Shown here: piece by piece, positions 1,385 to 64,000 of the stretch
Layout: each line of letters opens with the position of its first letter
Numbering within the stretch: position 1 is the stretch's first letter
From: Eukaryota sp. TZLM1-RC
Lineage: Eukaryota > Protista > Metamonada: BaSk clade
Reading direction: 5' to 3'
Length of the DNA: 64,000 bases
Assembly: GCA_040285825.1 (NCBI GenBank)
Contig: JAUPSS010000007.1
Location: forward strand, 2,950,689 to 3,014,688
Program-made: the position numbers and the translations under genes
Notes under the pieces: model-generated
Told to the model about the DNA's origin: nothing
Databases searched by the model: none
Seen by the model: the letters and a program-made list of their open reading frames with translations, nothing else

Positions 1385-1809
1385 TTTTTTTTTACCAAAA
1401 TTTTAATTTTATTCAAAACCTATAAATCAACATCTAAAAAATCCATCTCTCACAGAACAAAAACACTAAATGCAACTCTCTCATAGTGAGATCCAAGAGA
1501 AAGCAAAGCATCAGAAACCATCTTCAACATCCCCTTAAAAATAGAAAACACAATTCTATTTTGCCAAAACAATCTGTTGAAATTTCTGCCAGTTGTTCTC
1601 TTTACAATCATTTCAAAATCATCCAAAAAACGTAAAGCAGTTGGTGCAAGTGAACCAAAAAGGGAAAATACAAATGGATACAAATTGTATTTTGCATGCT
1701 GTAGACTGGCTAATTTGGACAAAGGTTCATTGTATTTTTTGAATTTAAAATTTTCAGCATTTGAAAGGGTTATGAATTTCAGAATTAACTAGCCTTTCAT
1801 TTGAGGCAT
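1385..1809 (-). mobile_element. Family A short 3' fragment with poly(A)
   Basis: T-run from 1385, A-family 3' UTR and RLE C-terminus (ORF 1450-1722). Confidence 0.9.
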
Positions 1810-1874
1810 CAATCCTCAAGGATTTCCTCCTGAGTTGTCTGCGTCACGTTTAATTCCTCTCAGTAAGAAAAATA

Positions 1875-2022
1875 TTTCTGATTCACTATCTTCTTTTGGG
1901 AAATTTTCTGAATCTTTAGCGATTAATTGTTTTGATGTAGGGGAGGCAGGTTTTGAGGATGTGGAGTTTTAATTGTGTATTTCATATTTGTTGTTGAATA
2001 AAAATAAATAAGGTAAAAAAAA
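1875..2022 (+). mobile_element. Family B 3' tip inserted into G
   Basis: Encodes ...GFEDVEF*, then an A-tail; TSD AGTAAGAAAAATA at 1862-1874 and 2023-2035. Confidence 0.9.
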
Positions 2023-2207
2023 AGTAAGAAAAATAATGGAGTTAGACCTATTGCCATAGGTGAAGTTGTTTCACGATTATTGTCTTTGCTTGTGTTTTCT
2101 AGAATAAAAAATTGTGCCAAGGAATTTTTGAGGTCTTTTCAATTCGGTATCGGTACGTATGACGGTGCTAATTCCGCTGCTCTTGCTGTTGATCTTTTCA
2201 TGAATTT

Positions 2208-32700: not shown

Positions 32701-32810
32701 ATGGTAGTTTTACTATTTTGGACGCCATGTCTATTGACCCTTGTAATTCCTCTAACGAACATTACATTAACTCGGATGTAAATAATCCTCTTCTTACAGG
32801 CGAAAAATAT

Positions 32811-33535: not shown

Positions 33536-33710
33536 AGGCGAAAAATATAAAATTGCTAAATATGTTTTTTTTTAATTTAATTTTATTCTAAACCTATAAA
33601 TCAACATCTAAAAAATCCATCTCTCCCAAAACAAAAACACTAGATGCAACTCTCTCATAGTGAGATCCAAGAGAAAGCAAAGCATCAGAAACCATCTTCA
33701 ACATCCCCTT

Positions 33711-35120: not shown

Positions 35121-35164
35121 AACATCCCCTTAAAAATAGAAAACACAATTCTATTTTGCCAAAA

Positions 35165-41969: not shown

Positions 41970-42849
41970 AAAAATCTTTGACAATTTTTGTTGAAGCTTT
42001 TTACAGCAAAACTGTAAATTAAAAAGAGATCGGTTTGGAATTTCTTGAATTGATTGAGGAAAACATTTGGTCCAAATTTGTGGCGGCAATTTTTCAAGTT
42101 CACAAGATAACTCATACAAATAGGGACTGCAATTGGGAACTAACAGATGAGAATCATCAGGAAATCTACGAGAAAATTCATAAATTTTTTTTTGAAAAAT
42201 TTTAATTTATTATTAAACTACAGTCTAAAAGTCAATATCTTCAAAACAAGCTTCCACACATAAATATATCCGATTCATAAATAAAATTTTTGCCACCACC
42301 CAAGAATGCTGATTGACACAAAATTGAAGATTTAGTAAATCCAATACCCCCAAATTTGCTGAAGAAAATAAGTGACTTTTCAACATTCCTGGTTCTACAT
42401 CCAATAAATCAGCAAAAAATTCTGTTCTCAATGAATTGAATGAACGACAAAAATCTAATGCTATGGAAGGAGCACAAGATCTCAAAATGTGGGTTATTCT
42501 CCCAGTGTAGCAAATTTTAAGCATGAAAAATTTAATATGCTTTTCTATATCTAAAGAAGAAATTGAATCAAGTTCAATTTTCATTTTTTCCAAAATAACT
42601 TGCAATTCATTCTGAATTTGAGGCACATTTCCTAACCAACAACCAAGGAACTTAAAAGCATCACTACTATAATTAGTAAAAGGGACAATAGAATCGTTTA
42701 TCACGAGGTCTTGAGCAGAAGAGCCAATCAGAAGGCATTTGCTGGCATTAAGATGAAGCCCAATATTTTCATATGAATCGGCAATTTCTTGAGCAACCAA
42801 TTCTAGTAAATCAAATGAACCAATCAAGGATATATCATCCATATAAGCA

Positions 42850-44148: not shown

Positions 44149-45540
44149 ATATAAGCAACTATTTTTATAGAAGGGTATTTTTGCTTAATGATATTTAAAG
44201 TTTTGTGAATAGCTAAACAAAACAATAATGGACCTAAAGGGTCACCTTGCTTCACACCAGAAGATGATTTAAGACCAAATGAATTAAAAATTAAATCTGA
44301 TTCTTTCCCATTTATCTCTTTCTCGTTTGCTGGCATCAATTGTCTTCGATCGTGTCAAAGACAAAGCTTCTACATTTTTAAATCCTCATCAATTTGGAAT
44401 CAAAACAATTGATGGTGCTTCTGTTGCTGCTATTGCCTCTGATACCTTTTTTAATGCAGAGGAAAATAATTTTATTTTTAATCTCGACTTTAAAAATGCT
44501 TTTAATTCTGTAAAGCGAGAAGCAATTTTTGAAGTTATTAAATCTGATTTTCCTGAGCTATCGAGTTTTTTCTACCATTTTTATGGTAAAGAATCAGATT
44601 TAATTTTTAATTCATTTGCTCTTAAATCATCTTCTGGTGTGAAGCAAGGTGACCCTTTAGGTCCATTATTGTTTTGTTTAGCTATTCACAAAACTTTAAA
44701 TATCATTAAGCAAAAATACCCTTCTATAAAAATAGTTGCTTATATGGATGATATATCCTTGATTGGTTCATTTGATTTACTAGAATTGGTTGCTCAAGAA
44801 ATTGCCGATTCATATGAAAATATTGGGCTTCATCTTAATGCCAGCAAATGCCTTCTGATTGGCTCTTCTGCTCAAGACCTCGTGATAAACGATTCTATTG
44901 TCCCTTTTACTAATTATAGTAGTGATGCTTTTAAGTTCCTTGGTTGTTGGTTAGAAATGTGCCTCAAATTCAGAATGAATTGCAAGTTATTTTTGGAAAA
45001 AAATGAAAATTGAACTTGATTCAATTTCTTCTTTAGATATAGAAAAGCATATTAAATTTTTTATGCTTAAAATTTGCTACACTGGGAGAATAACCCACAT
45101 TTTGAGATCTTGTGCTCCTTCCATAGCATTAGATTTTTGTCGTTCTTTTAATTCATTGAGAACAGAATTTTTTGCTGATTTATTGGATGTAGAACCAGGA
45201 ATGTTGAAAAGCCATTTATTTTCTTCAGCAAATTTGGGGGTATTGGATTTACTAAATCTTCAATTTTGTGTCAATCAGCATTCTTGGGTGGTGGCAAAAA
45301 TTTTATTTATGAATTTTCTCGTAGATTTCCTGATGATTCCCATCTGTTAGTCCCCAATTGTAGTCCCTATTTGTATGAGTTATCTTGTGAACTTGAAAAA
45401 TTACCGCCACAAATTTGGACCAAATGCTTTCCTCAATCAATTCAAGAAATTCCAAACCGATCTCTATTTAATTTACAGTTTTGCTGTAAAAAGCTTCAAC
45501 AAAAATTGTCAAAGATTTTTGAAAGCTTGGATTTTGATGT

Positions 45541-46024
45541 CATATTACCTGGATTAGATGGAAGCTTCATTTTATTGGATGTAATGTCTGTTGATCCTTG
45601 TAATGCCTCAAATGAAAGGCTTGTTAATTCTGAAATTCATAATCCCCTTTCAAATGCTGAAAATTTTAAATTCAAAAAATACAATGAACCTTTGTCCAAA
45701 TTGGCCAGTCTACAGCATGCAAAATACAATTTGTATCCATTTGTATTTTCCCTTTTTGGTTCACTTGCACCAACTGCTTTACGTTTTTTGGATGATTTTG
45801 AAATGATTGTAAAGAGAAGAACTGGGAGAAATTTCAACAAATTGTTTTGGCAAAATAGAATTGTGTTTTCTATTTTTAAGGGGATGTTGAAGATGGTTTC
45901 TGATGCTTTGCTTTCTCTTGGATCTCACTATGAGAGAGTTGCATCTAGTGTTTTTGTTTTGGGAGAGATGGATTTTTTAGATGTTGATTTATAGGTTTTG
46001 AATAAAATTAAATTTAAAAAAAAA
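45541..46024 (+). mobile_element. Family A 3' fragment inserted in A
   Basis: TSD TGGATTTTGATGT at 45528-45540 and 46025-46037. Confidence 0.85.
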
Positions 46025-47812
46025 TGGATTTTGATGTTAGACTTGGCTTGGCCAAGAAAAAGAATCCCGCTTTTGCAAATCTTTTACAAGATATGTGTGA
46101 CAGTACTTCTTCTGCCTTAGTAACAACAATTCCACAAGTTTATGGTACTCTCTTATCCGATTCTGCTTGGACTCTGAATATGAGATTTCGTTCCTTTATC
46201 TGGCCTGATAATTTACCTCATAATTTAATTTGTAAATGTTCTCGAGAAATTACAACTACTCATTTGTTAAATTGTAAACATTTTATTACTTTTAGCAGCA
46301 AGGTTCATGATGCTGTAAGAGACCAGTTATATTGTATGTGTAAATCTCATAGAATTGAATCCTTCTTGGAACCTCTGTTGTCAAATCTGTTTGATGCTGA
46401 AAATGATTTTCATAAGAATAATAGAGGTGATGTCATATTACCTGGATTAGATGGAAGCTTCATTTTATTGGATGTAATGTCTGTTGATCCTTGTAATGCC
46501 TCAAATGAAAGGCTTGTTAATTCTGAAATTCATAATCCCCTTTCAAATGCTGAAAATTTTAAATTCAAAAAATACAATGAACCTTTGTCCAAATTGGCCA
46601 GTCTACAGCATGCAAAATACAATTTGTATCCATTTGTATTTTCCCTTTTTGGTTCACTTGCACCAACTGCTTTACGTTTTTTGGATGATTTTGAAATGAT
46701 TGTAAAGAGAAGAACTGGGAGAAATTTCAACAGATTGTTTTGGCAAAATAGAATTGTGTTTTCTATTTTTAAGGGGATGTTGAAGATGGTTTCTGATGCT
46801 TTGCTTTCTCTTGGATCTCACTATGAGAGAGTTGCATCTAGTGTTTTTGTTTTGGGAGAGATGGATTTTTTAGATGTTGATTTATAGGTTTTGAATAAAA
46901 TTAAATTTAAAAAAAAAATGGATTTTGATGTTAGACTTGGCTTGGCCAAGAAAAAGAATCCCGCTTTTGCAAATCTTTTACAAGATATGTGTGACAGTAC
47001 TTCTTCTGCCTTAGTAACAACAATTCCACAAGTTTATGGTACTCTCTTATCCGATTCTGCTTGGACTCTGAATATGAGATTTCGTTCCTTTATCTGGCCT
47101 GATAATTTACCTCATAATTTAATTTGTAAATGTTCTCGAGAAATTACAACTACTCATTTGTTAAATTGTAAACATTTTATTACTTTTAGCAGCAAGGTTC
47201 ATGATGCTGTAAGAGACCAGTTATATTGTATGTGTAAATCTCATAGAATTGAATCCTTCTTGGAACCTCTGTTGTCAAATCTGTTTGATGCTGAAAATGA
47301 TTTTCATAAGAATAATAGAGGTGATGTCATATTACCTGGATTAGATGGAAGCTTCATTTTATTGGATGTAATGTCTGTTGATCCTTGTAATGCCTCAAAT
47401 GAAAGGCTTGTTAATTCTGAAATTCATAATCCCCTTTCAAATGCTGAAAATTTTAAATTCAAAAAATACAATGAACCTTTGTCCAAATTGGCCAGTCTAC
47501 AGCATGCAAAATACAATTTGTATCCATTTGTATTTTCCCTTTTTGGTTCACTTGCACCAACTGCTTTACGTTTTTTGGATGATTTTGAAATGATTGTAAA
47601 GAGAAGAACTGGCAGAAATTTCAACAGATTGTTTTGGCAAAATAGAATTGTGTTTTCTATTTTTAAAGGGATGTTGAAGATGGTTTCTGATGCTTTGCTT
47701 TCTCTTGGATCTCACTATGAGAGAGTTGCATCTAGTGTTTTTGTTTTGGGAGAGATCGATTTTTTAGATGTTGATTTATAGGTTTAGAATAAAAAGGTTT
47801 CGCTTAAAAAAA
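46025..47812 (+). repeat. Tandem 894-bp duplication of the family A 3' portion
   Basis: ORFs 46024-46887 and 46891-47781; same poly(A)|TGGATTTTG junction; shared FSSKVH variant. Confidence 0.88.
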
Positions 47813-49408
47813 ATTTTTTTCAAAAGATGTCGTTGGAGCTTTTTCAACGCAAATTTTAATGAATACAAACTTCTGTCTGGAATTTCTTGAATGGATATGG
47901 GGAAACATGATTGCCATAAGTCCGGAGATAAACTGGAAATTTCTTCTCTTAAGTTATCGAGGAATAGGCTATTTGTAGTTTCAAGAAGATTTTCGGCAAA
48001 GGATATCTTCTGGAGAATTCAAATACAAAATTTTTCCACCACCAATAAATGCAGCTTTGGTCAAATATTTTGATGAATTGAATCCAACACCGCCAAGTTG
48101 AACATCAGAAAAAAATATGATTTTTCAAAATTGATGGATCAACAGACATTAAATAAGCCAAAAATTGGGTACGTATTTTGTTAAATTGTCTACAAAAATT
48201 GTAAGTTAGGGATGGAGGTAATGATCTCAGTAAATGTGTAATTTTTCCAGCATAACAAATTTTCAAAAGAAAAAACTTAAGATGTTTTTCCAATTCAAGA
48301 GTCTTTATGACTTCTAGCTCTTTTTTAATTGAATTTAAATAATTTTCAAGGCTATCAAGTGTTTTTTCGGCGGAACCTAAATAGCAACCAAGAAAGCAGA
48401 AACTAGTTGAAGTATAATCAATATATGGAACTTCAAGGGAATTAATTATTAACTTTACATTTTTCCTAGAAATACAAAAACATTTTTGAACATTCAACTC
48501 AAGACCTATGGATTGGTATAATGTAGCAGCTTCATTAGCAACCCTATTAATTGTACTTTCTGGACCTCTTCTGCTCAAGACCTCGTGATAAACGATTCTA
48601 TTGTCCCTTTTACTAATTATAGTAGTGATGCTTTTAAGTTCCTTGGTTGTTGGTTAGGAAATGTGCCTCAAATTCAGAATGAATTGCAAGTTATTTTGGA
48701 AAAAATGAAAATTGAACTTGATTCAATTTCTTCTTTAGATATAGAAAAGCATATTAAATTTTTTATGCTTAAAATTTGCTACACTGGGAGAATAACCCAC
48801 ATTTTGAGATCTTGTGCTCCTTCCATAGCATTAGATTTTTGTCGTTCTTTTAATTCATTGAGAACAGAATTTTTTTGCTGATTTATTGGATGTAGAACCA
48901 GGAATGTTGAAAAGCCATTTATTTTCTTCAGCAAATTTGGGGGTATTGGATTTACTAAATCTTCAATTTTGTGTCAATCAGCATTCTTGGGTGGTGGCAA
49001 AATTTTATTTATGAATTTTCTCGTAGATTTCCTGATGATTCTCATCTGTTAGTCCCCAATTGTAGTCCCTATTTGTATGAGTTATCTTGTGAACTTGAAA
49101 AATTACCGCCACAAATTTGGACCAAATGTTTTCCTCAATCAATTCAAGAAATTCCAAACCGATCTCTATTTAATTTACAGTTTTGCTGTAAAAAGCTTCA
49201 ACAAAAATTGTCAAAGATTTTTGAAAGCTTGGATTTTGATGTTAGACTTGGCTTGGCCAAGAAAAAGAATCCCGCTTTTTGCAAATCTTTTTACAAGATA
49301 TGTGTGACAGTACTTCTTCTGCCTTAGTAACAACAATTCCACAAGTTTATGGTACTCTCTTATCCGATTCTGCTTGGACTCTGAATATGAGATTTCGTTC
49401 CTTTATCT

Positions 49409-52400
49409 TTATTTTTTTTTTAAAATTTAATTTTATTCTAAACCTATAAATCAACATCTAAAAATCCATCTCTCCCAAAACAAAACACTAGATGCAACTC
49501 TCTCATAGTGAGATCCAAGAGAAAGCAAAGCATCAGAAACCATCTTCAACATCCCCTTAAAAATAGAAAACACAATTCTATTTTGCCAAAACAATCTGTT
49601 GAAATTTCTGCCAGTTCTTCTCTTTACAATCATTTCAAAATCATCCAAAAACGTAAAGCAGTTGGTGCAAGTGAACCAAAAGGGAAAATACAAATGGATA
49701 CAAATTGTATTTTGCATGCTGTAGACTGGCCAATTTGGACAATGGTTCATTGTATTTTTGAATTTAAAATTTTCAGCATTTGAAAGGGGATTATGAATTT
49801 CAGAATTAACAAGCCTTTCATTTGAGGCATTACAAGGATCAACAGACATTACATCCAATAAAATGAAGCTTCCATCTAATCCAGGTAATATGACATCACC
49901 TCTATTATTCTTATGAAAATCATTTTCAGCATCAAACAGATTTGACAACAAAGGTTCCAAGAAGGATTCAATTCTATGAGATTTACACATACAATATAAC
50001 TGGTCTCTTACAGCATCATGAACCTTGCTTCTAAAAGTAATAAAATGTTTACAATTTAACAAATGAGTAGTTGTAATTTCTTGAGAACATTTACAAATTA
50101 AATTATGAGGTAAATTATCAGGCCAGATAAAGGAACGAAATCTCATATTCAGAGTCCAAACAGAATCGGATAAGAGAGTACCATAAACTTGTGGAATTGT
50201 TGTTACTAAGGCAGAAGAAGTACTGTCACACATATCTTGTAAAAGATTTGCAAAAGCGGGATTCTTTTTCTTGGCCAAGCCAAGTCTAACATCAAAATCC
50301 AAGCTTTCAAAAATCTTTGACAATTTTTGTTGAAGCTTTTTACAGCAAAACTGTAAATTAAATAGAGATCGGTTTGGAATTTCTTGAATTGATTGAGGAA
50401 AACATTTGGTCCAAATTTGTGGCGGTAATTTTTCAAGTTCACAAGATAACTCATACAAATAGAGACTACAATTGGGGACTAACAGATGAGAATCATCAGG
50501 AAATCTACGAGAAAATTCATAAATAAAATTTTTGCCACCACCCAAGAATGCTGATTGACACAAAATTGAAGATTTAGTAAATCCAATACCACCCAAATTT
50601 GCTGAAGAAAATAAATGGCTTTTCAACATTCCTGGTTCTACATCCAATAAATCAGCAAAAAATTCTGTTCTCAATGAATTAAAAGAACGACAAAAATCTA
50701 ATGCTATGGAAGGTGCACAAGATCTCAAAATGTGGGTTATTCTCCCAGTGTAGCAAATTTTAAGCATGAAAAATTTAATATGCTTTTCTATATCTAAAGA
50801 AGAAATTGAATCAAGTTCAATTTTCATTTTTTCCAAAATAACTTGCAATTCATTCTGAATTTGAGGCACATTTCCTAACCAACAACCAAGGAACTTAAAA
50901 GCATCACTACTATAATTAGTAAAAGGGACAATAGAATCGTTTATCACGAGGTCTTGAGCAGAAGAGCCAATCAGAAGGCATTTGCTGGCATTAAGATGAA
51001 GCCCAATATTTTCATATGAATCGGCAATTTCTTGAGCAACCAATTCTAGTAAATCAAATGAACCAATCAAGGATATATCATCCATATAAGCAACTATTTT
51101 TTATAGAAGGGTATTTTTGCTTAATGATATTTAAAGTTTTGTGAATAGCTAAACAAAACAATAATGGGCCTAAAGGATCTCCCTGCTTCACTCCAGAAGA
51201 TGATTTAAGACCAAATGAATTAAAAATTAAATCTGATTCTTTCCCATAAAAATGGTAGAAAAAAACTCGATAGCTCAGGAAAGTCAGATTTAATAATTTC
51301 AAAAATTGCTTCTCGCTTTACAGAATTAAAAGCATTTTTAAAGTCGAGATTAAAAATAAAATTATTTTCCTCTGCATTAAAAAAGGTATCAGAGGCAATA
51401 GCAGCAACAGAAGCACCATCAATTGTTTTGATTCCAAATTGATGAGGATTCAAAAATGTAGAAGCTTTGTCTTTGACACGATCGAAGACAATTGATGCTA
51501 GCAAACGAGAAAGAGATTCACCAACAGCAATTGGGCGTATTCCATCAGGTTTGATTCCGTTTCCAGGCTTTACTAAAGCAATCAGACGTGCTGCGAGTAA
51601 TTCAAATGGAGGATTAATTTTCAAAACAATCAATTGTTGAAAATAGTGGGCTAGATCATCAGCAATTTCGGGAGCACTGGAACACGCTATTTTTAACAGA
51701 TCAAAAGAAATTCCAGATGGGCCTGCTGCTTTCCCCTTTGGCAATTTTTGAATAGCTTTAAGAACTTCAATTGCAGTAATAGGATTTTCAATCCAAAAAG
51801 GACACACTTCAGGCTTGCTGCACTTGAAATTTTCTTGAGGATGCAACTTTTGAAGTTTTTCAAGGGTATCAGAGTTTGCATCAGCCAAAGAAGAGGAAAA
51901 CAAAGACTGCTTTGCGGCACCATAACGACCACGTAAGCACAATTTACGGCAAATTTTTGATTTTACAATTTTTCTATTTCCAAATTTTTTTCTTAAAACA
52001 ATTTTTGTTTTTTCTAGCAAAATATTTCCAGAAGGATGAAATATTCCACTTATTATTTTTCAATTCAGAAGTAAAATTTCTCATTTCCATTGAGAAGGGG
52101 ATTGTGCTGGCGGGACTTATTTCTACTGGGATCCGGATCGGGGGTCTTACGGTATCAACGGCTTTACAATTCGTACAAAACAGAAGTTTTCGACCATTTC
52201 GTGAATCTGCAACATCTTTTTTGCAAAATGGACAACAAAAATTACTGTTTTCAGAAGGGGAAGAAGAGGGAACATTAGAAGCATTTAACTGTTGATCGTC
52301 AGAAACATTATTTTCAGCACCTTTCACAACGGCAACAGCTGGAACAGAACATTTGAGAATTTGTTGAGCAGATTTTAATTCAAATTCTCTTTTTTGTTTC

Positions 52401-52898
52401 TCAGGGCACGTTCTCGAATTATGACCACTGAAACCACAAATCGAACATTTTTTAGAACCTTTTAATGGCAGTGGTTTCAATTTTTCAGTTCTTTCAATTT
52501 TGTTAATTTGTGAGTTAAAAGTAGAAATAGACATTTGACTATTTGCAGTTTCAGCTGGAGAAAACAAATTTCGAGAAACGGAGTTGTTAATAGAACGCGC
52601 AACAGAACGCAAGGAACGTAATGGTGGTTTTTCTGTGTTTTTTCTGGTACAATGATCAGTTTTTGAATGAAAATTTTTTTGAGATGAATTTCGAGCATAG
52701 CTTGTATTGTGGGGAGAGTGGGGAAGTGGAGTGGATGAGCTTGATCTGACTGGTAGAATCTTTGCTTGGGCGTTCCAATCAGTATCAGAGTCACTATCAG
52801 CCAAAGGCATCGTTTTGACAGAGAAACAGTACGACTTTGACGCCTTGACAGAAAGTGAAATATGAAAGGGTTGACTAAGGGAGGGAGAAAAAAAAATA
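49409..52898 (-). mobile_element. Family A full-length element (about 3.5 kb)
   Basis: Poly(T) at left; TSD TTCCTTTATCT at 49398-49408 and 52899-52909. Confidence 0.92.
49444..52810 (-). CDS. Family A polyprotein (about 1120 aa: knuckle, C4 finger, RT, CCHC, RLE) with apparent frameshifts at homopolymer runs
   Basis: ORF pieces 51974-52810, 51220-52020, 51078-51302 and 49451-51085; CSICGFSGHNSRTC, CPFC...CTNC, QGDPLGP, YMDD, RGDV. Confidence 0.8.
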
Positions 52899-53833
52899 TT
52901 CCTTTATCTGGCCTGATAATTTACCTCATAATTTAATTTGTAAATGTTCTCGAGAAATTACAACTACTCATTTGTTAAATTGTAAACATTTTATTACTTT
53001 TAGAAGCAAGGTTCATGATGCTGTAAGAGACCAGTTATATTGTATGTGTAAATCTCATAGAATTGAATCCTTCTTGGAACCTTTGTTGTCAAATCTGTTT
53101 GATGCTGAAAATGATTTTCATAAGAATAATAGAGGTGATGTCATATTACCTGGATTAGATGGAAGCTTCATTTTATTGGATGTAATGTCTGTTGATCCTT
53201 GTAATGCCTCAAATGAAAGGCTTGTTAATTCTGAAATTCATAATCCCCTTTCAAATGCTGAAAATTTTAAATTCAAAAAAATACAATGAACCTTTGTCCA
53301 AATTGGCCAGTCTACAGCATGCAAAATACAATTTGTATCCATTTGTATTTTCCCTTTTGGTTCACTTGCACCAACTGCTTTACGTTTTTGGATGATTTTG
53401 AAATGATTGTAAAGAGAAGAACTGGCAGAAATTTCAACAGATTGTTTTGGCAAAAATAGAATTGTGTTTTCTATTTTTAAGGGGATGTTGAAGATGGTTT
53501 CTGATGCTTTGCTTTCTCTTGGATCTCACTATGAGAGAGTTGCATCTAGTGTTTTTGTTTTGGGAGAGATGGATTTTTTTAGATGTTGATTTATAGGTTT
53601 AGAATAAAATTAAATTTTAAAAAAAAAAATTCTGGACCAATACAAAAATGTCATCCATGTAGGCTACCACTTGAAGGTCAGAATTTTCTTCTTTTAATTT
53701 TTTTCAAAATTGGGTGAATTGCAAGACAAAAAAAGAAAGGACCTAAAGGGTCTCCTTGTTTAACTCCTGATAAAGAATCAAGATTAAAAGAATTAAAAAT
53801 TAAATCAGATGAATTACCATAAAACCTATAAAA

Positions 53834-56048
53834 AAAGGTTCCCTTTTGATGTTCATCTGATCAATGGTGAATCAAATTTTTATTTGAATCAACTTCAAAT
53901 CGAATTAGATAATTTGCCTAGTGATATCTGGATTCAGTGTTTTCCTCAAAATGTTCAAGAAATTCCCACCCGATCACTTCCAAATTTACGTTTTTGCTTG
54001 AAAAAGCTTCAGCACCATCTGGTTAAATTATATGAAGGCTTGGATTATGAAGTAAGACTTGGCTTGGCCAAAACTAAAAATCCCGCTTTCGGTAATTTTT
54101 TAAAGGATATTCGTGATAAGTCAGCTGCTGCTTTAGTAACTCAAGTTCCCTCTGTTTATGGACTTTTGTTAAAAAAACAATGAATGGCTTCTAAACATGC
54201 GTTTTCGTTGTTTTCTGTGGCCAAACAATTTGCCCAATCATTTAACTTGTAAATGTGGTAAACCTCTTTTGTTTACTCATCTTTTGAACTGTAAACAATT
54301 CATTACGTTTAGAAGCAAAGTGCATAATAACGTCAGGGACCAAATTTATGTAATGTGCAAATCATATCGAGTAGATTCTTTTTAGAACCGCTGTTATCAA
54401 AATTAATTCTTGATGATCCCAATATTGATAGTACGCGTTACAACAGAGCTTCTATGGGTCTGACTAGAGGTGATCTAGTTGTTCCTGGTTTAAATGGTAG
54501 TTTTACTATTTTGGACGCCATGTCTATTGACCCTTGTAATTCCTCTAACGAACATCTCATTAACTCGGATGTAAATAATCCTCTTTTTGCAGGCGAAAAA
54601 TATAAAATTGCTAAATATGCGAAACCCATTTCCTCGGTTAATGAAAATTCTCATGCCTAATATAATTTATGTCCATTTGTTTTTTCTTTGCTTGGATCTC
54701 TAGGTAAGGCTGCTATGGCTTTCCTTGAGGATTTTGTTGTCTCTGAAAACATTGCGGCGGAATACAAAGAAATTGGATTAGCTTTGAACCCATCTAAATG
54801 TCTCTTGATTGGTAGAGAAAAACAATCTTTGATGATTGGTGGAGCTCAGATTCTTTTTATCAATTATGACCAACAAGCTTTTAAGTTTCTTGGATGTTGG
54901 CTTGGCAATTTGGATGAAATTTATTCCCAGTTAAACAATTTATTGGAGAAGTTTGACAAGGATCTTAGTTTTATTGCTGAATGTGACATTGAGAAACACA
55001 TCAAATTTTTTTATTTTAAAATTTGTTATTCTGGAAAATTCACTCATATTTTAAGGTCAACTCCCCTTCGGTATCTCTCAATTTTTGCAGATCTTTTAAC
55101 AAACTTCGAGTCAAATTTTTTTATTAGAAGTAAATGAATCTTTAATTCGAAGTCATGTATTTTGTTCAGCAGATTTGGGTGGAATTGGATTCACCAAATC
55201 TTCGATTCTGTGTAAAGCAGCATTTTTGGGAGGTGGTAAAAATTTTGTTTTTGAATTTTTCCAAAGGTTCCCTTTTGATGTTCATCTGATCAATGGTGAA
55301 TCAAATTTTTATTTGAATCAACTTCAAATCGAATTAGATAATTTGCCTAGTGATATCTGGATTCAGTGTTTTCCTCAAAATGTTCAAGAAATTCCCACCC
55401 GATCACTTCCAAATTTACGTTTTTGTTTGAAAAAGCTTCAGCACCATCTGGTTAAATTATATGAAGGCTTGGATTATGAAGTAAGACTTGGCTTGGCCAA
55501 AACTAAAAATCCCGCTTTCGGTAATTTTTTAAAGGATATTCGTGATAGTTCAGCTGCTGCTTTAGTAACTCAAGTTCCCTCTGTTTATGGACTTTTGTTA
55601 AAAGACAATGAATGGCTTCTAAACATGCGTTTTCGTTGTTTTCTGTGGCCAAACAATTTGCCCAATCATTTAACTTGTAAATGTGGTAAACCTCTTTTGT
55701 TTACTCATCTTTTGAACTGTAAACATTTCATTACGTTTAGAAGCAAAGTGCATAATAACGTCAGGGACCAAATTTATGTAATGTGCAAATCATATCGAGT
55801 AGATTCCTTTTTAGAACCGCTGTTATCAAAATTAATTCTCGATGATCCCAATATTGATAGTACGCGTTACAACAGAGCTTCTATGGGTCTGCCTAGAGGT
55901 GATCTAGTTGTTCCTGGTTTAAATGGTAGTTTTACTATTTTGGACGCCATGTCTATTGACCCTTGTAATTCCTCTAACGAACATTACATTAACTCGGATG
56001 TAAATAATCCTCTTCTTACAGGCGAAAAATATAAAATTGCTAAATATG
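53834..56048 (+). mobile_element. Family B segments (paralog of 30610-33564 without the C insertion)
   Basis: ORFs 53809-54660, 54688-55137 and 55175-56074. Confidence 0.88.
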
Positions 56049-56193
56049 TTTTTTTTAATTTAATTTTATTCTAAACCTATAAATCAACATCTAAAAAATC
56101 CATCTCTCCCAAAACAAAAACACTAGATGCAACTCTCTCATAGTGAGATCCAAGAGAAAGCAAAGCATCAGAAACCATCTTCAACATCCCCTT

Positions 56194-57640
56194 TGAAGAA
56201 GAATTGATGGTTCTTTCAGATTTAAATATTGAAAAACATCTTAAATTTTTCTTCCTCAGAATTTGTTATTCAGGGAAATTTACTCATATTTTACGATCAA
56301 CATCACCATCTATTTCTCTCGAATTTTGCAGAATTTTTAATGAATTAAGAACAAAATTTTTGGCTAATTTGCTCGATATTGATTCTTCTTTTTACGTAGT
56401 CATATTTTTTTGTAGCACAGAATTGGGAGGCCTGGATTTTCACAAATCAAAATATTTGTGTAAAGCCGCATTCATCGGTGGAGGAAAAAAATTTCGTTTT
56501 TGAATTTTTGAAACGTTTTCCTGAAAACCAGCATTTGATAGAATGTTGTGTTAGTGACTATTTAGTGTCCTTGCAGAGTGAAATTGAATGCATCTCTCCT
56601 CACATATGGTCCAAATGCTTTCCTGCTGATATTCAAGAAATTCCACCCAGGAGTTTGATTTCCTTGAAATTTGCATATGCTAAATTGCAGAAAAAGATAT
56701 TAAAAGTTTTTGAAAACTTGGATTTCACTGTTCGTCTTAGCTTGGCTAAAGAAAAGAATCCCGTTTTTGCAAACTTTTTAATTGACCTCAAGGATAGTAG
56801 CTCAAGTTGTCTTATTTCCCAGATTCCAAATGTATATGGTCTATTATTAAATGATCATCAATGGACAACTGCCTTCAGGATGAGGTGTTTCCTGTGGCCA
56901 TGTAGTGTGCCAAATGATTTGATTTGTCGTTGTGGTCAGCTCATTAATCTGAATCATTTATTTAATTGCAAATTTAATATTACATATCGCTCAGTTGTTC
57001 ACGATGCTGTTAGAGACCAACTATACGCTATGTGCAAAAGCCATCACATTGAAGCTTTTGTTGAACCACTTGTGCGAAGGTTGTCATCTGAAAATGAAAA
57101 TGAAAATACTTTTGGGAAACGCCGTGCTGATTTAATTACCCCTGCGTCTGATGGTGTTATTAAAGTTGTTGATGTTGTCACTGTTGATGTTTGTAAAGAC
57201 TCAGCAATTGACTTTGCTAAAAGAGATGAAACTCCACTTTGCTTTGCTGAAAAGAGCAAAATCAAAAAGTACAATGAACCCTTATCTCAGCTAGGACGTG
57301 TTGAGCATGTTAAGTATCAGTTGGTTCCATTTGCTGTTTCTCTTTTTGGTAACATTGGAATATCTGGCATTAAATTTCTTGAAGGTTTCAGAAGTTTAAT
57401 AAAAGAAAGAGCAGGAAAAGAATTGAACTTCAATTTCTGGCACAATAGAATTGTTTTCAGTATTCTTAAAGCAATTCCAGAAATGTTGACCAAAGTACTG
57501 TTACAATTAGGAATAGAGTATGAAAATCGCGCGCTTAAAAGATTTGATGATGTTGATGCGTGTATTGAGGATATTGAGTTCTAGTTTTTTGTTTAATGTT
57601 TTGTTAGCGTTGAAAATAAATTTATCCTATTTTAAAAAAA
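56194..57640 (+). mobile_element. Family E element within A(-) (56049-58421), intact C-terminus
   Basis: ORF 56478-57584 ends DDVDACIEDIEF; same TSD as the copy at 33711. Confidence 0.9.
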
Positions 57641-58421
57641 AACATCCCCTTAAAAATAGAAAACACAATTCTATTTTGCCAAAACAATCTGTTGAAATTT
57701 CTGCCAGTTCTTCTCTTTACAATCATTTCAAAATCATCCAAAAAACGTAAAGCAGTTGGTGCAAGTGAACCAAAAGGGAAAATACAAATGGATACAAATT
57801 GTATTTTGCATGCTGTAGACTGGCCAATTTGGACAAAGGTTCATTGTATTTTTTGAATTTAAAATTTTCAGCATTTGAAAGGGGATTATGAATTTCAGAA
57901 TTAACAAGCCTTTCATTTGAGGCATTACAAGGATCAACAGACATTACATCCAATAAAATGAAGCTTCCATCTAATCCAGGTAATATGACATCACCTCTAT
58001 TATTCTTATGAAAATCATTTTCAGCATCAAACAAATTTGACAACAGAGGTTCCAAGAAGGATTCAATTCTATGAGATTTACACATACAATATAACTGGTC
58101 TCTTACAGCATCATGAACCTTGCTTCTAAAAGTAATAAAATGTTTACAATTTAACAAATGAGTAGTTGTTGTAATTTCTCGAGAACATTTACAAATTAAA
58201 TTATGAGGTAAATTATCAGGCCAGATAAAGGAACGAAATCTCATATTCAGAGTCCAAGCAGAATCTGATAAGAGAGTACCATAAACTTGTGGAATTGTTG
58301 TTACTAAGGCAGAAGAAGTACTGTCACACATATCTTGTAAAAGATTTGCAAAAGCGGGATTCTTTTTCTTGGCCAAGCCAAGTCTAACATCAAAATCCAA
58401 GCTTTCAAAAATCTTTGACAA

Positions 58422-61400
58422 GAATTCCAAAAAAATGTGAAAATTATCAAAATCCATCTACTTCTTATTCTGTAACTGCCGCTGCTGCTGAATTAAATAA
58501 TTTAGAATTTAATTTACCTCCCAAACATGAGTGCACTGCAGAAGACAATGATGCAGTGATGTTAGACATTTGTAGTGAAGCAGGTCAAATTGATAATTGT
58601 GCTATTTGTAAAGAAAAAGCTGAAAGATATATTTTAAAAAATAATTTATATGTATGCCATGTTTGCTCCTCACTTGATACACTACGGCCTCCATGTAAGA
58701 TTCCGAATGTTCTTAGTCCCAAGGCTTCCATTCCCTTTTCTGTTGCGTTTAGAACATTCAGTCTTGCTTTGAAAAAGGAGAATGGGATGTTTTTTTCTAT
58801 TTGGAAATTCTTCCTTGAACAAAAATCAGGTTCTCGTCCCCAAAAGGTTTTCACTCCAAAAAAACAACCCAAGAATAAGACTGTACGAAAACTTTTGCTA
58901 CGTGGGAGATATGGTTCAGGGAAAAACGCTCTGTTTTCATCTGATCTTGCTCCTGTGACTGATGAAACTGTAAATCAATTAGTAGATCTGCATCCAGCTG
59001 AATTTCTTAATTTGGATAATCCATCTGCTTCACAATTTTGGAAACAAAATCCACTTTCTGAAAAAGAAGTTGAAACTGCCATTTTTCGTCTTCCATCTGG
59101 AAAAGCTCCAGGTCCATCTGGAATAACTTTTGATATGCTGAAATCTGTGTGCCGCCAAAATTCCTTTATTATTAAAGATTTATGTTCCTTTTTTCAAGAT
59201 GTTTTGACAATGAAAATTGTTCCACCCAAAAGAATTAAGTGCATCACGGTTAGTGGCTTTAACTAAACCTAATGGAAAAGTTCGCCCAATTGCTATAGGT
59301 GAAGCCATTTATCGCCTGATGTCTTCAGTAATTTTTAACCGAGTTTCAACAAAAGCTAAAGAATACTTTTCTCCATTCCAATATGGAATCAAAACCATAG
59401 ATGGAGCTTCAGTTGCGGCTTTGACATCTGATCTTTTTTTCAATTGTCACGAAAATAGTTGCATTTTTAATCTTGATTTCAAAAATGCTTTCAATTCAGT
59501 GAAAAGAGATTCAATTTGGAAAGAAATCAAATCAAATTTTCCTGAACTCGAAACCTTTTTTTATAGGTTTTATGGTAATTCATCTGATTTAATTTTTAAT
59601 TCTTATAATCTTGATTCTTTATCAGGAGTTAAACAAGGAGACCCTTTAGGTCCTTTCTTTTTTTGTCTTGCAATTCACCCAATTTTGAAAAAATTAAAAG
59701 AAGAAAATTCTGACCTTCAAGTGGTAGCCTACATGGATGACATTTCTTGTATTGGTCCAGAAAGTACAATTAATAGGGTTGCTAATGAAGCTGCTACATT
59801 ATACCAATCCATAGGTCTTGAGTTGAATGTTCAAAAATGTTTTTGTATTTCTAGGAAAAATGTTTTTTTTTATTTTTTTAAAAAAACTGGAATATTTATT
59901 GAGATAAAAATAACCATCTAGAATTCAATATCCTCCAAACAAGCGTCACTATTACTGAACCTACTCACAGCATTACGTTCATATTCTACACCAATAGCTA
60001 AAAGTGCCTTTGAAATCATTGTTGGAATAGACTTGAAAATGCAAAAAACAATTCTATTTAACCAGAAAGTGGAGTTCATTGTTTTACCAGACCTATTCAG
60101 TAACACTTTTTTAAAATTTTCCAAAAAGTGCAAGCCTGAAGGTCCAATATTGCCAAAAAGAGAAATTGCAAACGGCACAAACTGATATTTCACATGTTCC
60201 ACTCTACCTAACTGTGCCAAAGGTTCTTCATATATTTTTATCTTCTTATTTTCGGCGTCAGATAACGGCGAGTCAGCGGAATACACTAAACGAGCAGCAG
60301 AATTTTTGCAAACATCCACTGAGACAACGTCTACAACATTGAGAACACCATCGATCCCTGGAGCTACTAAATCTGCCCTTCTTTTACCAAAGGAATCATC
60401 AGTTTGATCTGAAGACAGCTTACGTACTAGTGGCTCGATAAATGCCTCTATATTGAAACTTTTGCACATGGCATATAATTGATCACGAACTGAGTCATGA
60501 ACAAGTGAGCGATAAGTTATGAAATACTTACAGTTTAAAATATGGGAAAGCGTAACAACACTCTTGCAGCGACAAATTAAATCATTTGGCAATGAACAAG
60601 GCCATAGAAAACATCTCAATCTCATTGCAGTGGTCCATTGGTGATCATTAAGTAGAAGGCCGTAAATGTTGGGAATTTGGGAGATTAAGCAAATTGAGCA
60701 ACTGTCTTCAAGATCAATCAAAAAGTTTGCAAAAACGGGATTTTTTTCCTTAGCCAAGCTAAGACGTACAATATAATCCAAGTTTTCTAAAACTTTCAAA
60801 ATTTTTTCTGCAATTTTGCAAAAAGTCAATGGTAAGGAGAGCAAGCTTCTTGAAGGAAGTTCCACAATATCAGAGGGGAAACATTTAGCCCAAATATTGG
60901 GTGAAAGAGTTTCAATTTCCTGTTGCAAAGAAATAAGATAGGAGCTGCCACAATTTTCAATGAGATGAATTTTTTCAGGAAAACGATTCACAAATTCATA
61001 AATAAAATTCTTTCCACCTCCAATAAAAGCAGCTTTACAAAGGTAGCTTGACTTATGAAAATCAACACCACCAAAATTTGTACCACAAAAAATGTGAAGA
61101 AAAATGTAAAGTTAATAATTAATTCCCTTGAAGTTCCATATATTGATTATACTTCAACTAGTTTCTGCTTTCTTGGTTGCTATTTAGGTTCCGCCGAAAA
61201 AAACACTTGATAGCCTTGAAAATTATTTAAATTCAATTAAAAAGAGCTAGAAGTCATAAAGACTCTTGAATTGGAAAAACATCTTAAGTTTTTTTCTTTT
61301 GAAAATTTGTTATGCTGGAAAAATTACACATTTACTGAGATCATTACCTCCATCCCTAACTTACAATTTTTGTAGACAATTTAACAAAATACGTACCCAA

Positions 61401-62669
61401 TTTTTGGCTTATTTAATTTCTGTTGATCCATCAATTTTGAAAAATCATATTTTTCTGATGTTCAACTTGGCGGTGTTGGATTCAATTCATCAAAATATTT
61501 GACCAAAGCTGCATTTATTGGTGGTGGAAAAATTTTGTATTTGAATTCTCCAGAAGATATCCTTTTGCCGAAAATCTTCTTGAAACTACAAATAGCCTAT
61601 TCCTCGATAACTTAAGAGAAGAAATTTCCAGTTTATCTCCGGACTTATGGCAATCATGTTTCCCCATATCCATTCAAGAAATTCCAGACAGAAGTTTGTA
61701 TTCATTAAAATTTGCGTTGAAAAAGCTCCAACGACATCTTTTGAAAAAAATTTGAAAGAAAGGATTTTATTGTTCGACTTAGCACGGCTAAGAAAGAAAA
61801 TCCTGCTTTTGCCAATTTTTTGATTGATTTGAAGGACAGTTCATCTGCAGTTTTGATAAATCAAATTCCCCAGATTTATGGTCTATTTTTGAATGACGAC
61901 CAATGGACCACTGCTATGAGAATGCGTTGTTATTTATGGCCTTGTAATTTGCCCAATGATTTGTTTTGCAAATGTGGAGCTGGTTTGACATTATCACATT
62001 TATTTAATTGTAATAGATTTATTTCCTATCGTTCTACGTTGCATGATGCAGTCAGAGATCAAATCCATGCAATGTGTAATTCCTATCATATTGAATCTTT
62101 TGTAGAACCTTTGTTGAGGTCTCTTGATATAAATGAAAGCGTAAGAGATTCAGAATATGGAAAACGACATGCTGATGTTGTTGTGCCCTCGTTTGATGAT
62201 GTCATGAATGTTGTTGATGTCGTAACAGTGGCTGTTTGCAAGAAAAATGCCTTGAAAAATGCTCAATCCGAAGTATCCCCCCTTGATGACTCCGAATTGT
62301 ACAAACGGAAAAAGTATGCAAATCCTTTAAAAGAATTGAAACATGTTCGCCATGTAGATTACCAAATTTGCCCATTTGCTATATCGTTGTATGGTCGTCT
62401 TGGAAAAACTGCTATGAATTTTATTGATGATTTTGAAAATCTTGTGAAAAGAAGAATGAATAAGCGTTTTGATCGTCGCTTGTGGCTAAATCGTATTGTT
62501 TTTACTATTTTCAAATCAATTCCCAAAATGATTTCGAAAGCTTTGATGTCTGTCAGTGCACATTACGAAGAAATTGCTGTTGTGAGGTTTGATGGTGTGG
62601 AAGCTTGTTTTGAAGATATTGACTTTTAGACTGTAGTTTAATAATAAATTAAAATTTTTCAAAAAAAAA
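58422..62669 (+). mobile_element. Family C long element (paralog of 38327-41969) interrupted by F
   Basis: ORFs 58415-59266, 59217-59921, 61266-61502 and 61820-62629. Confidence 0.9.
59864..61098 (-). mobile_element. Family F 5'-truncated insertion in C
   Basis: ORF 59918-60991; TSD GAAAAATGT at 59855-59863 and 61099-61107; empty site at about 40404. Confidence 0.9.
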
Positions 62670-63623
62670 ACAATTCCGCAAGTATATGGTACTCTCTTAT
62701 CCGATTCTGCTTGGACTCTGAATATGAGATTTCGTTCCTTTATCTGGCCTGATAATTTACCTCATAATTTAATTTGTAAATGTTCTCGAGAAATTACAAC
62801 TACTCATTTGTTAAATTGTAAACATTTTATTACTTTTAGAAGCAAGGTTCATGATGCTGTAAGAGACCAGTTATATTGTATGTGTAAATCTCATAGAATT
62901 GAATCCTTCTTGGAACCTCTGTTGTCAAATCTGTTTGATGCTGAAAATGATTTTCATAAGAATAATAGAGGTGATGTCATATTACCTGGATTAGATGGAA
63001 GCTTTATTTTATTGGATGTAATGTCTGTTGATTTTTGTAATGCCTCAAATGAAAGGCTTGTTAATTCTGAAATTCATAATCCCCTTTCAAATGCTGAAAA
63101 TTTTAAATTCAAAAAATACAATGAACCTTTGTCCAAATTGGCCAGTCTACAGCATGCAAAATACAATTTGTATCCATTTGTATTTTCCCTTTTTGGTTCA
63201 CTTGCACCAACTGCTTTACGTTTTTTGGATGATTTTGAAATGATTGTAAAGAGAAGAACTGGCAGAAATTTCAACAGATTGTTTTGGCAAAATAGAATTG
63301 TGTTTTCTATTTTTAAGGGGATGTTGAAGATGGTTTCTGATGCTTTGCTTTCTCTTGGATCTCACTATGAGAGAGTTGCATCTAGTGTTTTTGTTTTGGG
63401 AGAGATGGATTTTTTTAGATGTTGATTTATAGGTTTAGAATAAAATTAAATTTTAAAAAAAAAGTTTTCTATTTTTAAGGGGATGTTGAAGATGGTTTCT
63501 GATGCTTTGCTTTCTCTTGGATCTCACTATGAGAGAGTTGCATCTAGTGTTTTTGTTTTGGGAGAGATGGATTTTTTTAGATGTTGATTTATAGGTTTAG
63601 AATAAAATTAATTTTTTAAAAAA
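62670..63623 (+). mobile_element. Two head-to-tail 5'-truncated family A copies (62670-~63462; ~63463-63623)
   Basis: ORF 62724-63425; each begins right after the previous poly(A), with no individual TSD. Confidence 0.88.
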
Positions 63624-64000
63624 GATTCTTTCCCATAAAAATGGTAGAAAAAACTTAATAGCTCAGGAAAATCAGATTTAATAACTTCAAAAATTGCTGC
63701 TCGCTTTACAGAATTAAAAGCATTTTTAAAGTCGAGATTAAAAATAAAATTATTTTCCTCTGCATTAAAAAAGGTATCAGAGGCAATAGCAGCAACAGAA
63801 GCACCATCAATTGTTTTGATTCCAAATTGATGAGGATTCAAAAATGTAGAAGCTTTGTCTTTGACACGATCGAAGACAATTGATGCTAGCAAACGAGAAA
63901 GAGATTCACCAACAGCAATTGGGCGTATTCCATCAGGTTTGATTCCGTTTCCAGGCTTTACTAAAGCAATCAGACGTGCTGCGAGTAATTCAAATGGAGT

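Follow-up and report, generated by a model that had tools for sequence, protein, structure and literature searches.

The window, a 64,000-nucleotide stretch of DNA from the free-living metamonad protist Skoliomonas litria, lies in a retrotransposon nest, an array whose repeats are 96-99.9% identical (Table 1). The assembly that contains it (GCA_040285825.1) was built with ABruijn from Nanopore R9.4 reads at 41x and polished with Illumina reads. The elements of the nest have A-rich or poly(A) 3' ends, variable 5' truncation and target site duplications (TSDs), and at another locus they are inserted in gene-rich regions too. Their reverse transcriptase (RT) domain was recognized by Pfam RVT_1 (E = 1e-23 in family B and 1e-19 in family G), and its best PDB sequence matches were L1 ORF2p and R2 proteins. 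A CxC...H...C motif and an RGD...D...K pattern could be seen by eye in the C-termini of families A and B, a region with no sequence match in Pfam or PDB; they are candidates for the CCHC motif and the PD-(D/E)XK-type nuclease of R2/NeSL/CRE-like elements with a restriction-like endonuclease (RLE). When the A C-terminus was compared with PDB sequences, no useful match emerged, the domain searches of the element proteins gave no match to AP-endonuclease families, and the Rfam and tRNA scans of the window gave no ribozyme and no tRNA-like head.

Table 1. Coordinates of the interrupted host element, the two blocks and the insertions found in only one of them
Feature	Positions	Strand	Remarks
Host A(-), 3' and middle parts	33561-44311	-	A-reference 49410-51247
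D, nested in host A(-)	33711-35164		
G2, nested in host A(-)	35165-37576		private to donor block
C, nested in host A(-), ending the donor block	38327-41969	+	TSD (A)TCTTTGACAA
88-bp C tail, nested in host A(-)	42184-42272		
E, nested in host A(-)	42850-44148		
Left TSD copy, 13 bp	44299-44311		GATTCTTTCCCAT; in host A(-); flank alignment to 51235-51247
Left A piece (A2-left)	44312-45540	+	5'-truncated; other subfamily than the A1 of the donor; outside the young copy
794-bp A piece (A798)	62670-63463	+	A 3' end from A-reference 50201; abuts the C poly(A)
160-bp A tail (A160)	63464-63623	+	on the poly(A) of the 794-bp piece; from alignment
Right TSD copy, 13 bp	63624-63636		GATTCTTTCCCAT; flank alignment to 51235-51247
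Host A(-), resumption	63624-64000	-	A-reference 51235-51611; runs past the window to 64087
Donor block (B1)	26349-41969	+	collinear chain with B2; 0.88-kb 3' end of full-length A1(+), C(-), rearranged B pieces, host A(-) 3' part with D, C(+) to poly(A)
Block copy (B2)	46919-62669	+	9,461 bp in common with B1, 5 substitutions
G1, private to donor block	27309-29712		
C(-), private to donor block	32811-33530	-	
C fragment, private to donor block	39410-40032		
484-bp A	45541-46024	+	5'-truncated; 13-bp TSD TGGATTTTGATGT; inserted later than the block copy
894-bp hybrid A unit	46025-46918	+	5' 410 bp identical to 46919-47328; 3' 484 bp resembles the 484-bp A
1.55-kb A, private to block copy	48567-53629		with nested full-length A(-) at 49409-52898
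E(-), private to block copy	59864-61098	-	

The host A(-) element is split into two parts. Its flanks, 44149-44311 and 63624-63999, both match a single uninterrupted A(-), at 51084-51247 and 51235-51611, and the two alignments overlap by exactly the 13 bp GATTCTTTCCCAT, a sequence present at 44299, 51235 and 63624 only. Because the flanks form one A(-) copy with a 13-bp overlap, positions 44312-63623 are a TSD-bounded interruption of an A(-) element. A sequence-only reading of the window had already proposed that the host breaks at 44299-44311 and resumes with the same 13-mer at 63624, and both the match and the continuity of the flanks bear it out. As for the 19.3-kb unit itself, comparison with other copies leads us to infer that an element inserted first and that a 9.5-kb copy of the adjoining block was added to it afterwards.

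The young copy and its donor share 9,461 bp and diverge by 0.05%. This is less than the ~10.7 kb first estimated, and the paralogy does not begin near 24130 as had been thought, the left 1.2 kb belonging to another A subfamily. The right limit given by the same reading was exact: collinear paralogy stops at the poly(A) of family C, at 41969 and 62669, with 9 and 10 A respectively, and all C copies have tails of 8-10 A. Likewise, 41970-44311 has no counterpart after the second copy, as had been noticed. At the right junction of the block, poly(A) is followed by CAATTCC, much as poly(A) is followed by CAATTG at the ordinary C insertion junction at 25128, with a 2-nt A microhomology to the A target. 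On the left, A sequence of the other subfamily passes into A1-derived sequence by a switch within homology and not at the TSD, somewhere between 45427 and 47667. The copy lies ~2.3-5 kb downstream of its template. Independent site-specific insertions were considered as a source of the common junctions and rejected, since six of these share identical 5' truncation points and TSDs at 0.05% divergence. A search for the exact junction words in the 83 kb around the window and at two other loci returned the known sites only, with no third copy or donor; protein searches gave no third block and hundreds of related ORFs in the genome of Skoliomonas litria and its relatives.

All five substitutions between the blocks (47190, 54586, 57496, 62169 and 62232) are derived on the side of the copy and none on that of the donor (one-sided p = 0.03), and the five derived states were not found in any other family copy seen. 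Homopolymer indels between the young copies, at ~3 per kb, show an asymmetry of 16:4. As the consensus comes from Nanopore R9.4 reads at 41x, both the 5:0 and the 16:4 asymmetries could reflect uneven consensus quality.

The A sequence on the left of the block has a different history. Positions 44314-45540 differ from their supposed donor (24128-26361) at 20 of 1225 sites (1.63%), and the contrast with the divergence of the block is highly significant (Fisher p = 4e-15). Unrelated A copies differ from the same piece by 1.39-1.68%, so the supposed donor is no closer than they are; the closest relative is an A copy in another array, at 0.41%. Moreover, the markers of the left piece are those of another subfamily, and the 80-bp C-tail insertion of the donor subfamily is missing from it. 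We rejected the idea that it is an old, unhomogenised part of the same duplication, because its differences from A1 are subfamily markers present in other copies and not private changes. After the block come two 5'-truncated A pieces of 794 and 160 bp, joined poly(A) to head without TSDs of their own, as reported before. The 794-bp piece has the GTATATGG variant of a full-length A in another array, and this same full-length A is the nearest relative of both the 794-bp and the left piece. Judging by these affinities, the 794-bp piece is probably the remainder of the older A copy to which the left piece belongs. An origin by fold-back of the inverted A flank of C was discarded, with 11 differences in 792 bp. 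More simply, then, the 13-bp TSD may be that of the older A insertion (left piece, 794-bp piece and 160-bp tail), the block having been added later. The locus shows that a single TSD enclosing a large composite is no proof of a single event.

The sequence-only reading had instead proposed one target-primed event copying three RNAs, the last of more than 10 kb and reaching back to ~24130. According to this scenario, reverse transcription primed at GATTCTTTCCCAT would have copied the 160-bp tail, then the 794-bp piece, then a read-through RNA of the block, by end-to-end jumps. It has the merit of placing everything within one TSD and of accommodating the two joints without TSDs, from the C poly(A) to the 794-bp piece and from the poly(A) of the latter to the 160-bp tail, and R2-type RTs are known to jump between templates (PMC8857657). 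However, it also requires copy-choice onto a fourth RNA, that of an A of the other subfamily, as far as the 5' truncation at 44312. The scenario thus comes to four RNAs with three switches, one of the switches internal and homologous, unlike end-to-end jumping: the joints at 62669/70 and 63463/64 fit a 3'-to-5' connection, whereas the passage from the left piece into the block is a homologous switch. Furthermore, the left and 794-bp pieces look like a single copy of one subfamily cut in two, and the difficulties of proximity and RNA length described below weigh on this scenario as well. With the left 1.2 kb independent and the join a switch in homology, neither a 5' truncation nor an end-to-end jump, the three-RNA form is not supported, and we consider a single serial-jump event very improbable.

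We lean, tentatively and without calling it probable, towards an RNA-templated copy of the block into the older A insertion. First, a 5'-truncated A of ~2.1 kb (the left and 794-bp pieces), with the 160-bp tail behind it, would have entered the A(-) host by target-primed reverse transcription, producing the 13-bp TSD GATTCTTTCCCAT; this structure is observed, and a single insertion event would account for it. Second, a transcript of the array would have passed the 3' end of A1 and been polyadenylated at the family C site at 41969. This read-through RNA would then have been reverse-transcribed from a nick within the older A, at AACAA/CAATTCC (A-reference 50201). Some 9.5 kb further on, the cDNA would have been in A sequence again, and its 5' end may have been resolved through pairing with the homologous A upstream in the target. 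Such a second step would leave the block without its own TSD and without a discrete left junction.

Several features argue for the RNA route. The right end of the block is exactly a sense-strand poly(A), matching the polyadenylation site of the donor locus as in a retrocopy, and the right junction is like that of ordinary C insertions. The five substitutions all fall on the copy, and their number in 9,461 bp compares with the 1.6-4.7 expected from RT error, counting cDNA errors and half of the second-strand errors at published non-LTR RT rates of 1.2e-4 to 5.7e-4 per base (PMC11331410). In contrast, a 7.4-kb tandem duplication in the same array, used as a control, is symmetric (10:10). The elements are themselves RT-bearing. 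R2-type RTs are established template jumpers (PMC8857657; 10.1101/2021.04.30.442027), and for L1 integration it has been proposed that cDNA pairs with homologous DNA close by (10.1101/2024.08.27.596794). On the other hand, the copy adjoins its donor, as one would expect if it arose at the DNA level but not if an RNA intermediate were involved; the RNA must be at least 8.7 kb long and continue past the 3' ends of A1 and D; and two other local block duplications are not bounded by poly(A). Unlike a retrocopy, moreover, the block itself lacks a TSD, the 13-bp TSD bracketing everything from the left piece to the 160-bp tail. The earlier proposal of copying through RNA keeps the exact poly(A) end and gains the five copy-side substitutions, loses its extent and its single-event form, and stands at roughly even chances.

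Homology-anchored recombination or repair at the DNA level, into the same older A insertion, is the main rival, and we regard it as possible, though somewhat less likely than the RNA-templated copy. Donor and copy are adjacent and co-oriented, and the left junction lies within homology. Rearrangements of this type have occurred nearby: besides the 894-bp hybrid, the array contains the 7.4-kb tandem duplication, which is older than the block, has both breakpoints inside coding sequence and carries no private insertions, and a 3.7-kb block recurs at a distance of 69 kb with neither poly(A) nor TSD at its ends. Block duplications with breakpoints away from poly(A) had been named in advance as evidence against amplification through RNA; these two are such cases, and they count in part against it. 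A plain unequal crossover does not fit, however: the left breakpoint falls within A homology, but at the right one the C poly(A) meets unrelated A sequence, and 41970-44311 is not duplicated.

Three variants can be envisaged. In the first, a short C 3' fragment would already have sat in the older A at A-reference 50201, and a break between A and C would have been repaired from the neighbouring A1 to C interval, or two unequal crossovers would have occurred, so that all the sequence from the first A to the first co-oriented C was copied. Short co-oriented C fragments within A copies are common, and two of the five substitutions private to the copy (62169 and 62232) fall within the final 500 bp of C, as in a hybrid with an independent C fragment. 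Yet there is no trace of such a fragment, and none of the 16 other A copies covering the site is interrupted there. In the second variant, unequal crossover between the older A and A1 would have been followed by a deletion beginning at the C poly(A), such as one set off by renewed cutting of the target site by the nuclease of the element; in the third, one-ended repair synthesis would have halted by chance at the poly(A) and been joined through the 2-nt microhomology. Both require a breakpoint that matches the poly(A) end to the base. Moreover, no DNA variant accounts for substitutions on the side of the copy only (p = 0.03, or 0.125 if two are given to the C fragment), and repair synthesis is far too accurate for five changes in 9.5 kb.

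Known systems offer partial parallels to both routes. In LINE-1 3' and 5' transduction, transcripts that read through or that initiate upstream are retrotransposed together with adjacent DNA. As here, the flank that is copied directly adjoins the donor and stops at a polyadenylation site further downstream; copying starts at poly(A) with a variable 5' end, as proposed here. The present case differs by its ~9.5 kb, five element families and both strands, by the putative enzyme, which would come from an RLE LINE and not from L1, by the absence of a TSD of its own and by the few kb that separate it from its source. Chimeric L1s are known, and R2 5' junctions can form through upstream 28S sequence. 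Homology-assisted 5' resolution as proposed for L1 (10.1101/2024.08.27.596794) resembles our left side, which merges into a pre-existing homologous element without junction or TSD, although purely DNA-level recombination would give the same picture. The two joints without TSDs inside one TSD recall end-to-end jumping of the R2 type, which is known mainly in vitro, but the left joint is internal and homologous; the joint between the 794-bp piece and the 160-bp tail may equally be a later tail insertion or have arisen as a duplication by slippage. In transposon nests, non-allelic homologous recombination gives segmental or tandem duplications; our locus resembles them in its adjacent co-oriented copies and in a left breakpoint that lies within a repeat common to both, and the array has other products of this kind, whereas here the right breakpoint is at a poly(A) outside shared sequence and the 2.3 kb between the repeats were not duplicated.

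Whether the 9.5-kb block was copied via RNA is, in our judgement, about evenly balanced. The fuller claim, that an RLE LINE reverse-transcribed a ~9.5-kb read-through RNA spanning five nested families, which landed a few kb away with a homology-resolved 5' end, we place slightly below an even chance. If true, this would be an unusually long multi-element transduction by an RLE-type LINE; nests may then expand through retro-copies of entire blocks, new copies may end up close to where they came from, and RT fidelity in vivo would be estimated from the five copy-side substitutions at ~5e-4 per base. If the DNA route is true, the block is an ordinary segmental duplication in a nest, and its poly(A) end would be explained by an earlier C insertion. 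Whichever route was taken, the locus is a record of very active, uncharacterised LINE families in Skoliomonas litria.

GilM and GilT of Giardia, tandemly organised non-LTR elements of the RLE type, resemble these families in their metamonad host, single-ORF RT, putative C-terminal nuclease-like region, poly(A) tails and arrays. Here, by contrast, the elements occur in both orientations, are nested, have TSDs of 9-17 bp at loosely AT-rich sites and are found in gene-rich DNA as well. GilM and GilT have been used as an outgroup (PMC4640811).

The two blocks kept changing after the copying, with eight insertions, one unequal crossover giving the 894-bp unit and a 36-bp deletion. The insertions occupy seven sites, not listed in the sequence-only reading, of which the donor has four and the copy three (45541, 48567 and 59864), and amount to eight events because the 1.55-kb A at 48567 itself later took up a full-length A. 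Each has its own TSD, of 9-17 bp, while at the corresponding position the other block has an empty site where the TSD sequence occurs once. These insertions bear on another explanation, a wrong assembly path through near-identical A, C and block repeats, by mis-threading or from variants in the culture. An R9.4 assembly at 41x of repeats that are 96-99.9% identical speaks for this explanation, as do the ~3 homopolymer indels per kb between the young copies, and eight private insertions at 0.05% divergence make an odd contrast with none in the older tandem duplication. Assemblers, however, do not invent non-homologous junctions such as 44311/12, 62669/70 and 63623/24, least of all at a poly(A) with a 13-bp TSD, and the TSDs and empty sites of the private insertions also speak against an artefact, which we consider improbable. 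Logan short-read contigs over 58001-64000, from one study, are pieces of family consensus, and 62669/70 and 63623/24 are unbridged among the contigs listed; they weigh neither for nor against the junctions. One Logan contig corresponds to an uninterrupted A site, which is expected equally from any other A copy. Finally, the 894-bp hybrid, to judge from its two halves, looks like the expected product of an unequal crossover.

The window (contig JAUPSS010000007.1, positions 2,950,689-3,014,688, assembly GCA_040285825.1; G+C 33%) comes from the free-living anaerobic metamonad Skoliomonas litria ('Eukaryota sp. TZLM1-RC'). Related non-LTR retrotransposon families, labelled A, B, C, D, E and G, are nested within it; in places their mutual identity is 72-77%. 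The elements contain RVT_1 domains, with zinc knuckles at the N-terminus and a CCHC plus a nuclease-like motif at the C-terminus, and the best solved relatives of their RT are L1 ORF2p and R2 proteins. They carry A8-A10 tails and TSDs of 9-17 bp, and are inserted into one another in both orientations. Related copies also occur in a second array (L001) and, as older A and B fragments, amid ordinary genes (L003), so the families are not restricted to arrays. The genome was assembled from Nanopore R9.4 reads at 41x with ABruijn and corrected with Illumina data (PMC11316075); locus L002 is window 36024-56887, base for base.

The outer structure described by the sequence-only reading was confirmed in the assembled sequence. 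The 13-mer GATTCTTTCCCAT occurs three times, and the flanks of the composite, 44149-44311 and 63624-63999, match 51084-51247 and 51235-51611 within an uninterrupted A(-); since these two stretches of one copy overlap, exactly 13 bp were duplicated when the host A(-) was interrupted. Also inserted in this host are D, G2, C, an 88-bp C tail and E. The stretch paralogous to the upstream region stops exactly at the C poly(A), which is followed by host sequence after 41969 and by an A(+) piece after 62669. After the latter position come two A tails in head-to-tail order, 794 and 160 bp long, and then the right TSD.

Coordinates of the host element, insertions and repeated blocks (window positions unless a locus is named)
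Feature	Position	Strand	Remarks
Host A(-), single long element	33561-64087	(-)	end lies past the window
C in host A(-)	38327-41969		own TSD (A)TCTTTGACAA
C insertion, TSD ATCTTTGACAA	38312-38326 / 41970-41979		
484-bp A, TSD TGGATTTTGATGT	45528-45540 / 46025-46037 / 46919-46931		
Tandem duplication, 7.4 kb	5749-13125 and 13126-20485		14-17 substitutions, ~19 homopolymer indels
Repeated multi-element block, 3.7 kb	-1686..2042 (L005) and 67702..71432 (L004)		69 kb apart, 99.2%
Rearranged B piece	30610-32810, 53834-56048, 12288-13125, 19650-21017		
Rearranged B piece	72280-73425	(-)	past the window
Older A and B fragments (92-97%)	L003:8311-11680 (JAUPSS010000004.1)		neighbours RCC1-like, mRNA triphosphatase, AMPK beta and Med10 genes

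The left extent had to be redrawn. The copy had been taken to begin at the TSD and to derive there from the A(+) copy A1 (24128-26361), yet 44314-45540 belongs to a different subfamily: it differs from A1 at 20 of 1225 sites, is as distant from A1 as from unrelated A copies, and carries as its differences subfamily markers common to other copies. It is devoid of an 80-bp C-tail insertion present in A1 and the host, and the copy closest to it (0.41%) is a full-length A of the other array. Further right, 46919-47801 differs from 26349-27230 at 1 of 882 sites, and the collinear chain linking the donor block (26349-41969) to its copy (46919-62669) holds only 5 true substitutions per 9,461 shared bp, the apparent substitution clusters being paired homopolymer length changes. 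The divergence of the left part departs from that of the block (p = 4e-15). The switch from the foreign A subfamily to A1-derived sequence falls within 45427-47667, inside homologous A sequence; therefore, the young copy measures about 9.5 kb and does not reach left to the TSD. As a separate observation, the 80-bp C tail occupies the same site in A1(+) (26046-26125) and in the host A(-) (42184-42264). Because these two elements have common subfamily SNPs and are nevertheless 1.4% apart, inheritance from a common master copy is more likely than recent gene conversion.

The right junction reads ...TTTTTC-A10\|CAATTCC..., and intact A copies have AACAA\|CAATTCC at the same site, so 2 nt of the A run could come from the target. 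Given this comparison and the pA\|CAATTG found at a second C insertion, the junction resembles that of an ordinary C-type insertion, here one into an A(+) copy at position 50201 of the A reference. The GTATATGG variant in the 794-bp tail is shared by those L001 copies to which the left piece is closest, and this fits the view that tail and left piece are parts of a single older copy; the likelihood ratio, at about 4, is low, since 2 of 9 sampled copies bear this marker.

The models weighed (RNA, DNA, single chain, mis-assembly) all yield an identical final sequence, and a share of the probability was given to none of them. Our tentative preference is for an RNA route into the older A copy. It would explain why the block ends exactly at the poly(A), why the right junction resembles an insertion, why the left side is homologous and why the substitutions lie on the side of the copy. 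For this, the read-through RNA would have to be 8.7 kb or longer and to have landed a few kb from its source. With other family copies as outgroups, the copy carries the derived state at all five substitutions between the blocks and the donor at none; these derived states were absent from every other family copy seen. Polarisable homopolymer indels are split 16 to 4 between copy and donor; the 7.4-kb tandem duplication served as a control, and its derived changes are split 10:10. An R2-type enzyme has a published error rate of 1.2e-4 per base, and L1 has rates of 2.2e-4 for cDNA and 5.7e-4 for the second strand (PMC11331410); counting cDNA plus half of second-strand errors, 1.6-4.7 substitutions are expected per 9,461 bp, against 5 observed. 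Together with the 5:0 polarity, this count gives the strongest indication that copying was error-prone. It is nevertheless a weak indication, because it concerns five sites (p = 0.03), because the indels are of a type that Nanopore assemblies get wrong (about 3 homopolymer indels per kb separate any young pair here, G1/G2 included) and because uneven consensus quality could imitate the asymmetry.

DNA-level routes are only slightly less probable. They account for the proximity and the homologous left side and have local precedents, but presuppose that a C fragment, not seen today, was already present there, that a deletion began precisely at the poly(A), or that copying happened to stop at that point, and they leave the substitution asymmetry to chance or artefact. 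The precedents bear on the sequence-only reading, which had set against itself any other block duplication with breakpoints unrelated to poly(A); two such pairs were found, which counts partly against that reading. Both breakpoints of the 7.4-kb tandem duplication lie within coding sequence of B-derived pieces, and it has no poly(A), TSD or private insertion. With 9 kb of flank per side included, the 3.7-kb block, composed of a C(-) part, a B(+) with two nested A tails and a B 3' end, stops on the left inside C(-) and on the right 19 nt beyond an A9 run; no TSD was seen. DNA-level block copying thus operates in the array. No third copy of the block junctions was found in 83 kb (window and flanks) plus two other loci.

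Mis-assembly appears improbable, as it cannot easily generate three junctions that are non-homologous and are accompanied by a matching TSD. Short-read contigs from a single study, aligned on 58001-64000, are family-consensus pieces; among the matches listed, none bridges the diagnostic junctions, and these contigs weigh in neither direction. Least probable of all is the single target-primed event copying three RNAs in series that was originally envisaged, since such a chain would take four RNAs as well as a switch inside homologous sequence.

Four known processes come closest, namely LINE transduction, homology-assisted 5' resolution of LINE insertions, R2-type template jumping and unequal recombination in transposon nests, and the composite was found to belong to none of them. 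Unlike in LINE transduction, the block is without a TSD of its own; unlike in unequal recombination, its right breakpoint lies outside any shared repeat. Under an RNA route, the composite would represent a new variant of transduction, very long, multi-family, made by an RLE-type LINE and landing locally; under a DNA route, it would be an ordinary duplication.

After block copying, the donor gained G1, C(-), G2 and a C fragment, and lost 36 bp from its D. The copy gained a 1.55-kb A (which then received a full-length A(-)), E(-) and a 484-bp A at TGGATTTTGATGT. Every private insertion has a TSD and an empty site in the opposite block. The 894-bp unit at 46025-46918 combines two sources: 410 bp at its start are identical to the A of the block, and the remainder is like the 484-bp copy, with that copy's longer tail. 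Such a hybrid matches the product expected from unequal crossover. The blocks underwent eight private insertion events at 0.05% divergence, whereas the older 7.4-kb pair (0.2%) underwent none in 14.8 kb; either insertion density varies greatly from one part of the array to another, or divergence does not measure time equally in both pairs.

Several minor observations concern individual families. The full-length A at 49409-52898(-), described as intact and very young, has its ORF split across three frames by about 3 frameshifts, which may be homopolymer errors of the Nanopore assembly and not real defects. Two independent insertions, the C with TSD ATCTTTGACAA and the 484-bp A, struck family A at sites at most about 35 bp apart, and several 5'-truncated A copies start near these sites (A reference 50289-50323); this may be a preferred cleavage region. 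A rearranged B piece, in which B sequence is fused at ...GTTGT\|CTCTGAA... to a B segment from further upstream, is present at least 5 times; the rearranged form has itself multiplied. The D copy at L004:11882-14495 (equivalent to window 64605-67218), 99.5-99.8% identical to the block's D, contains a nested C(-) and, at its 5' end, a short inverted D segment that resembles a twin-priming product. Finally, the G copies at 27309-29712 and 35165-37576, inserted after the block duplication and 5 substitutions apart, begin no more than 7 nt from a common 5' point, which an older copy at ~7961 shares with them; this suggests a 2.4-kb truncated master.
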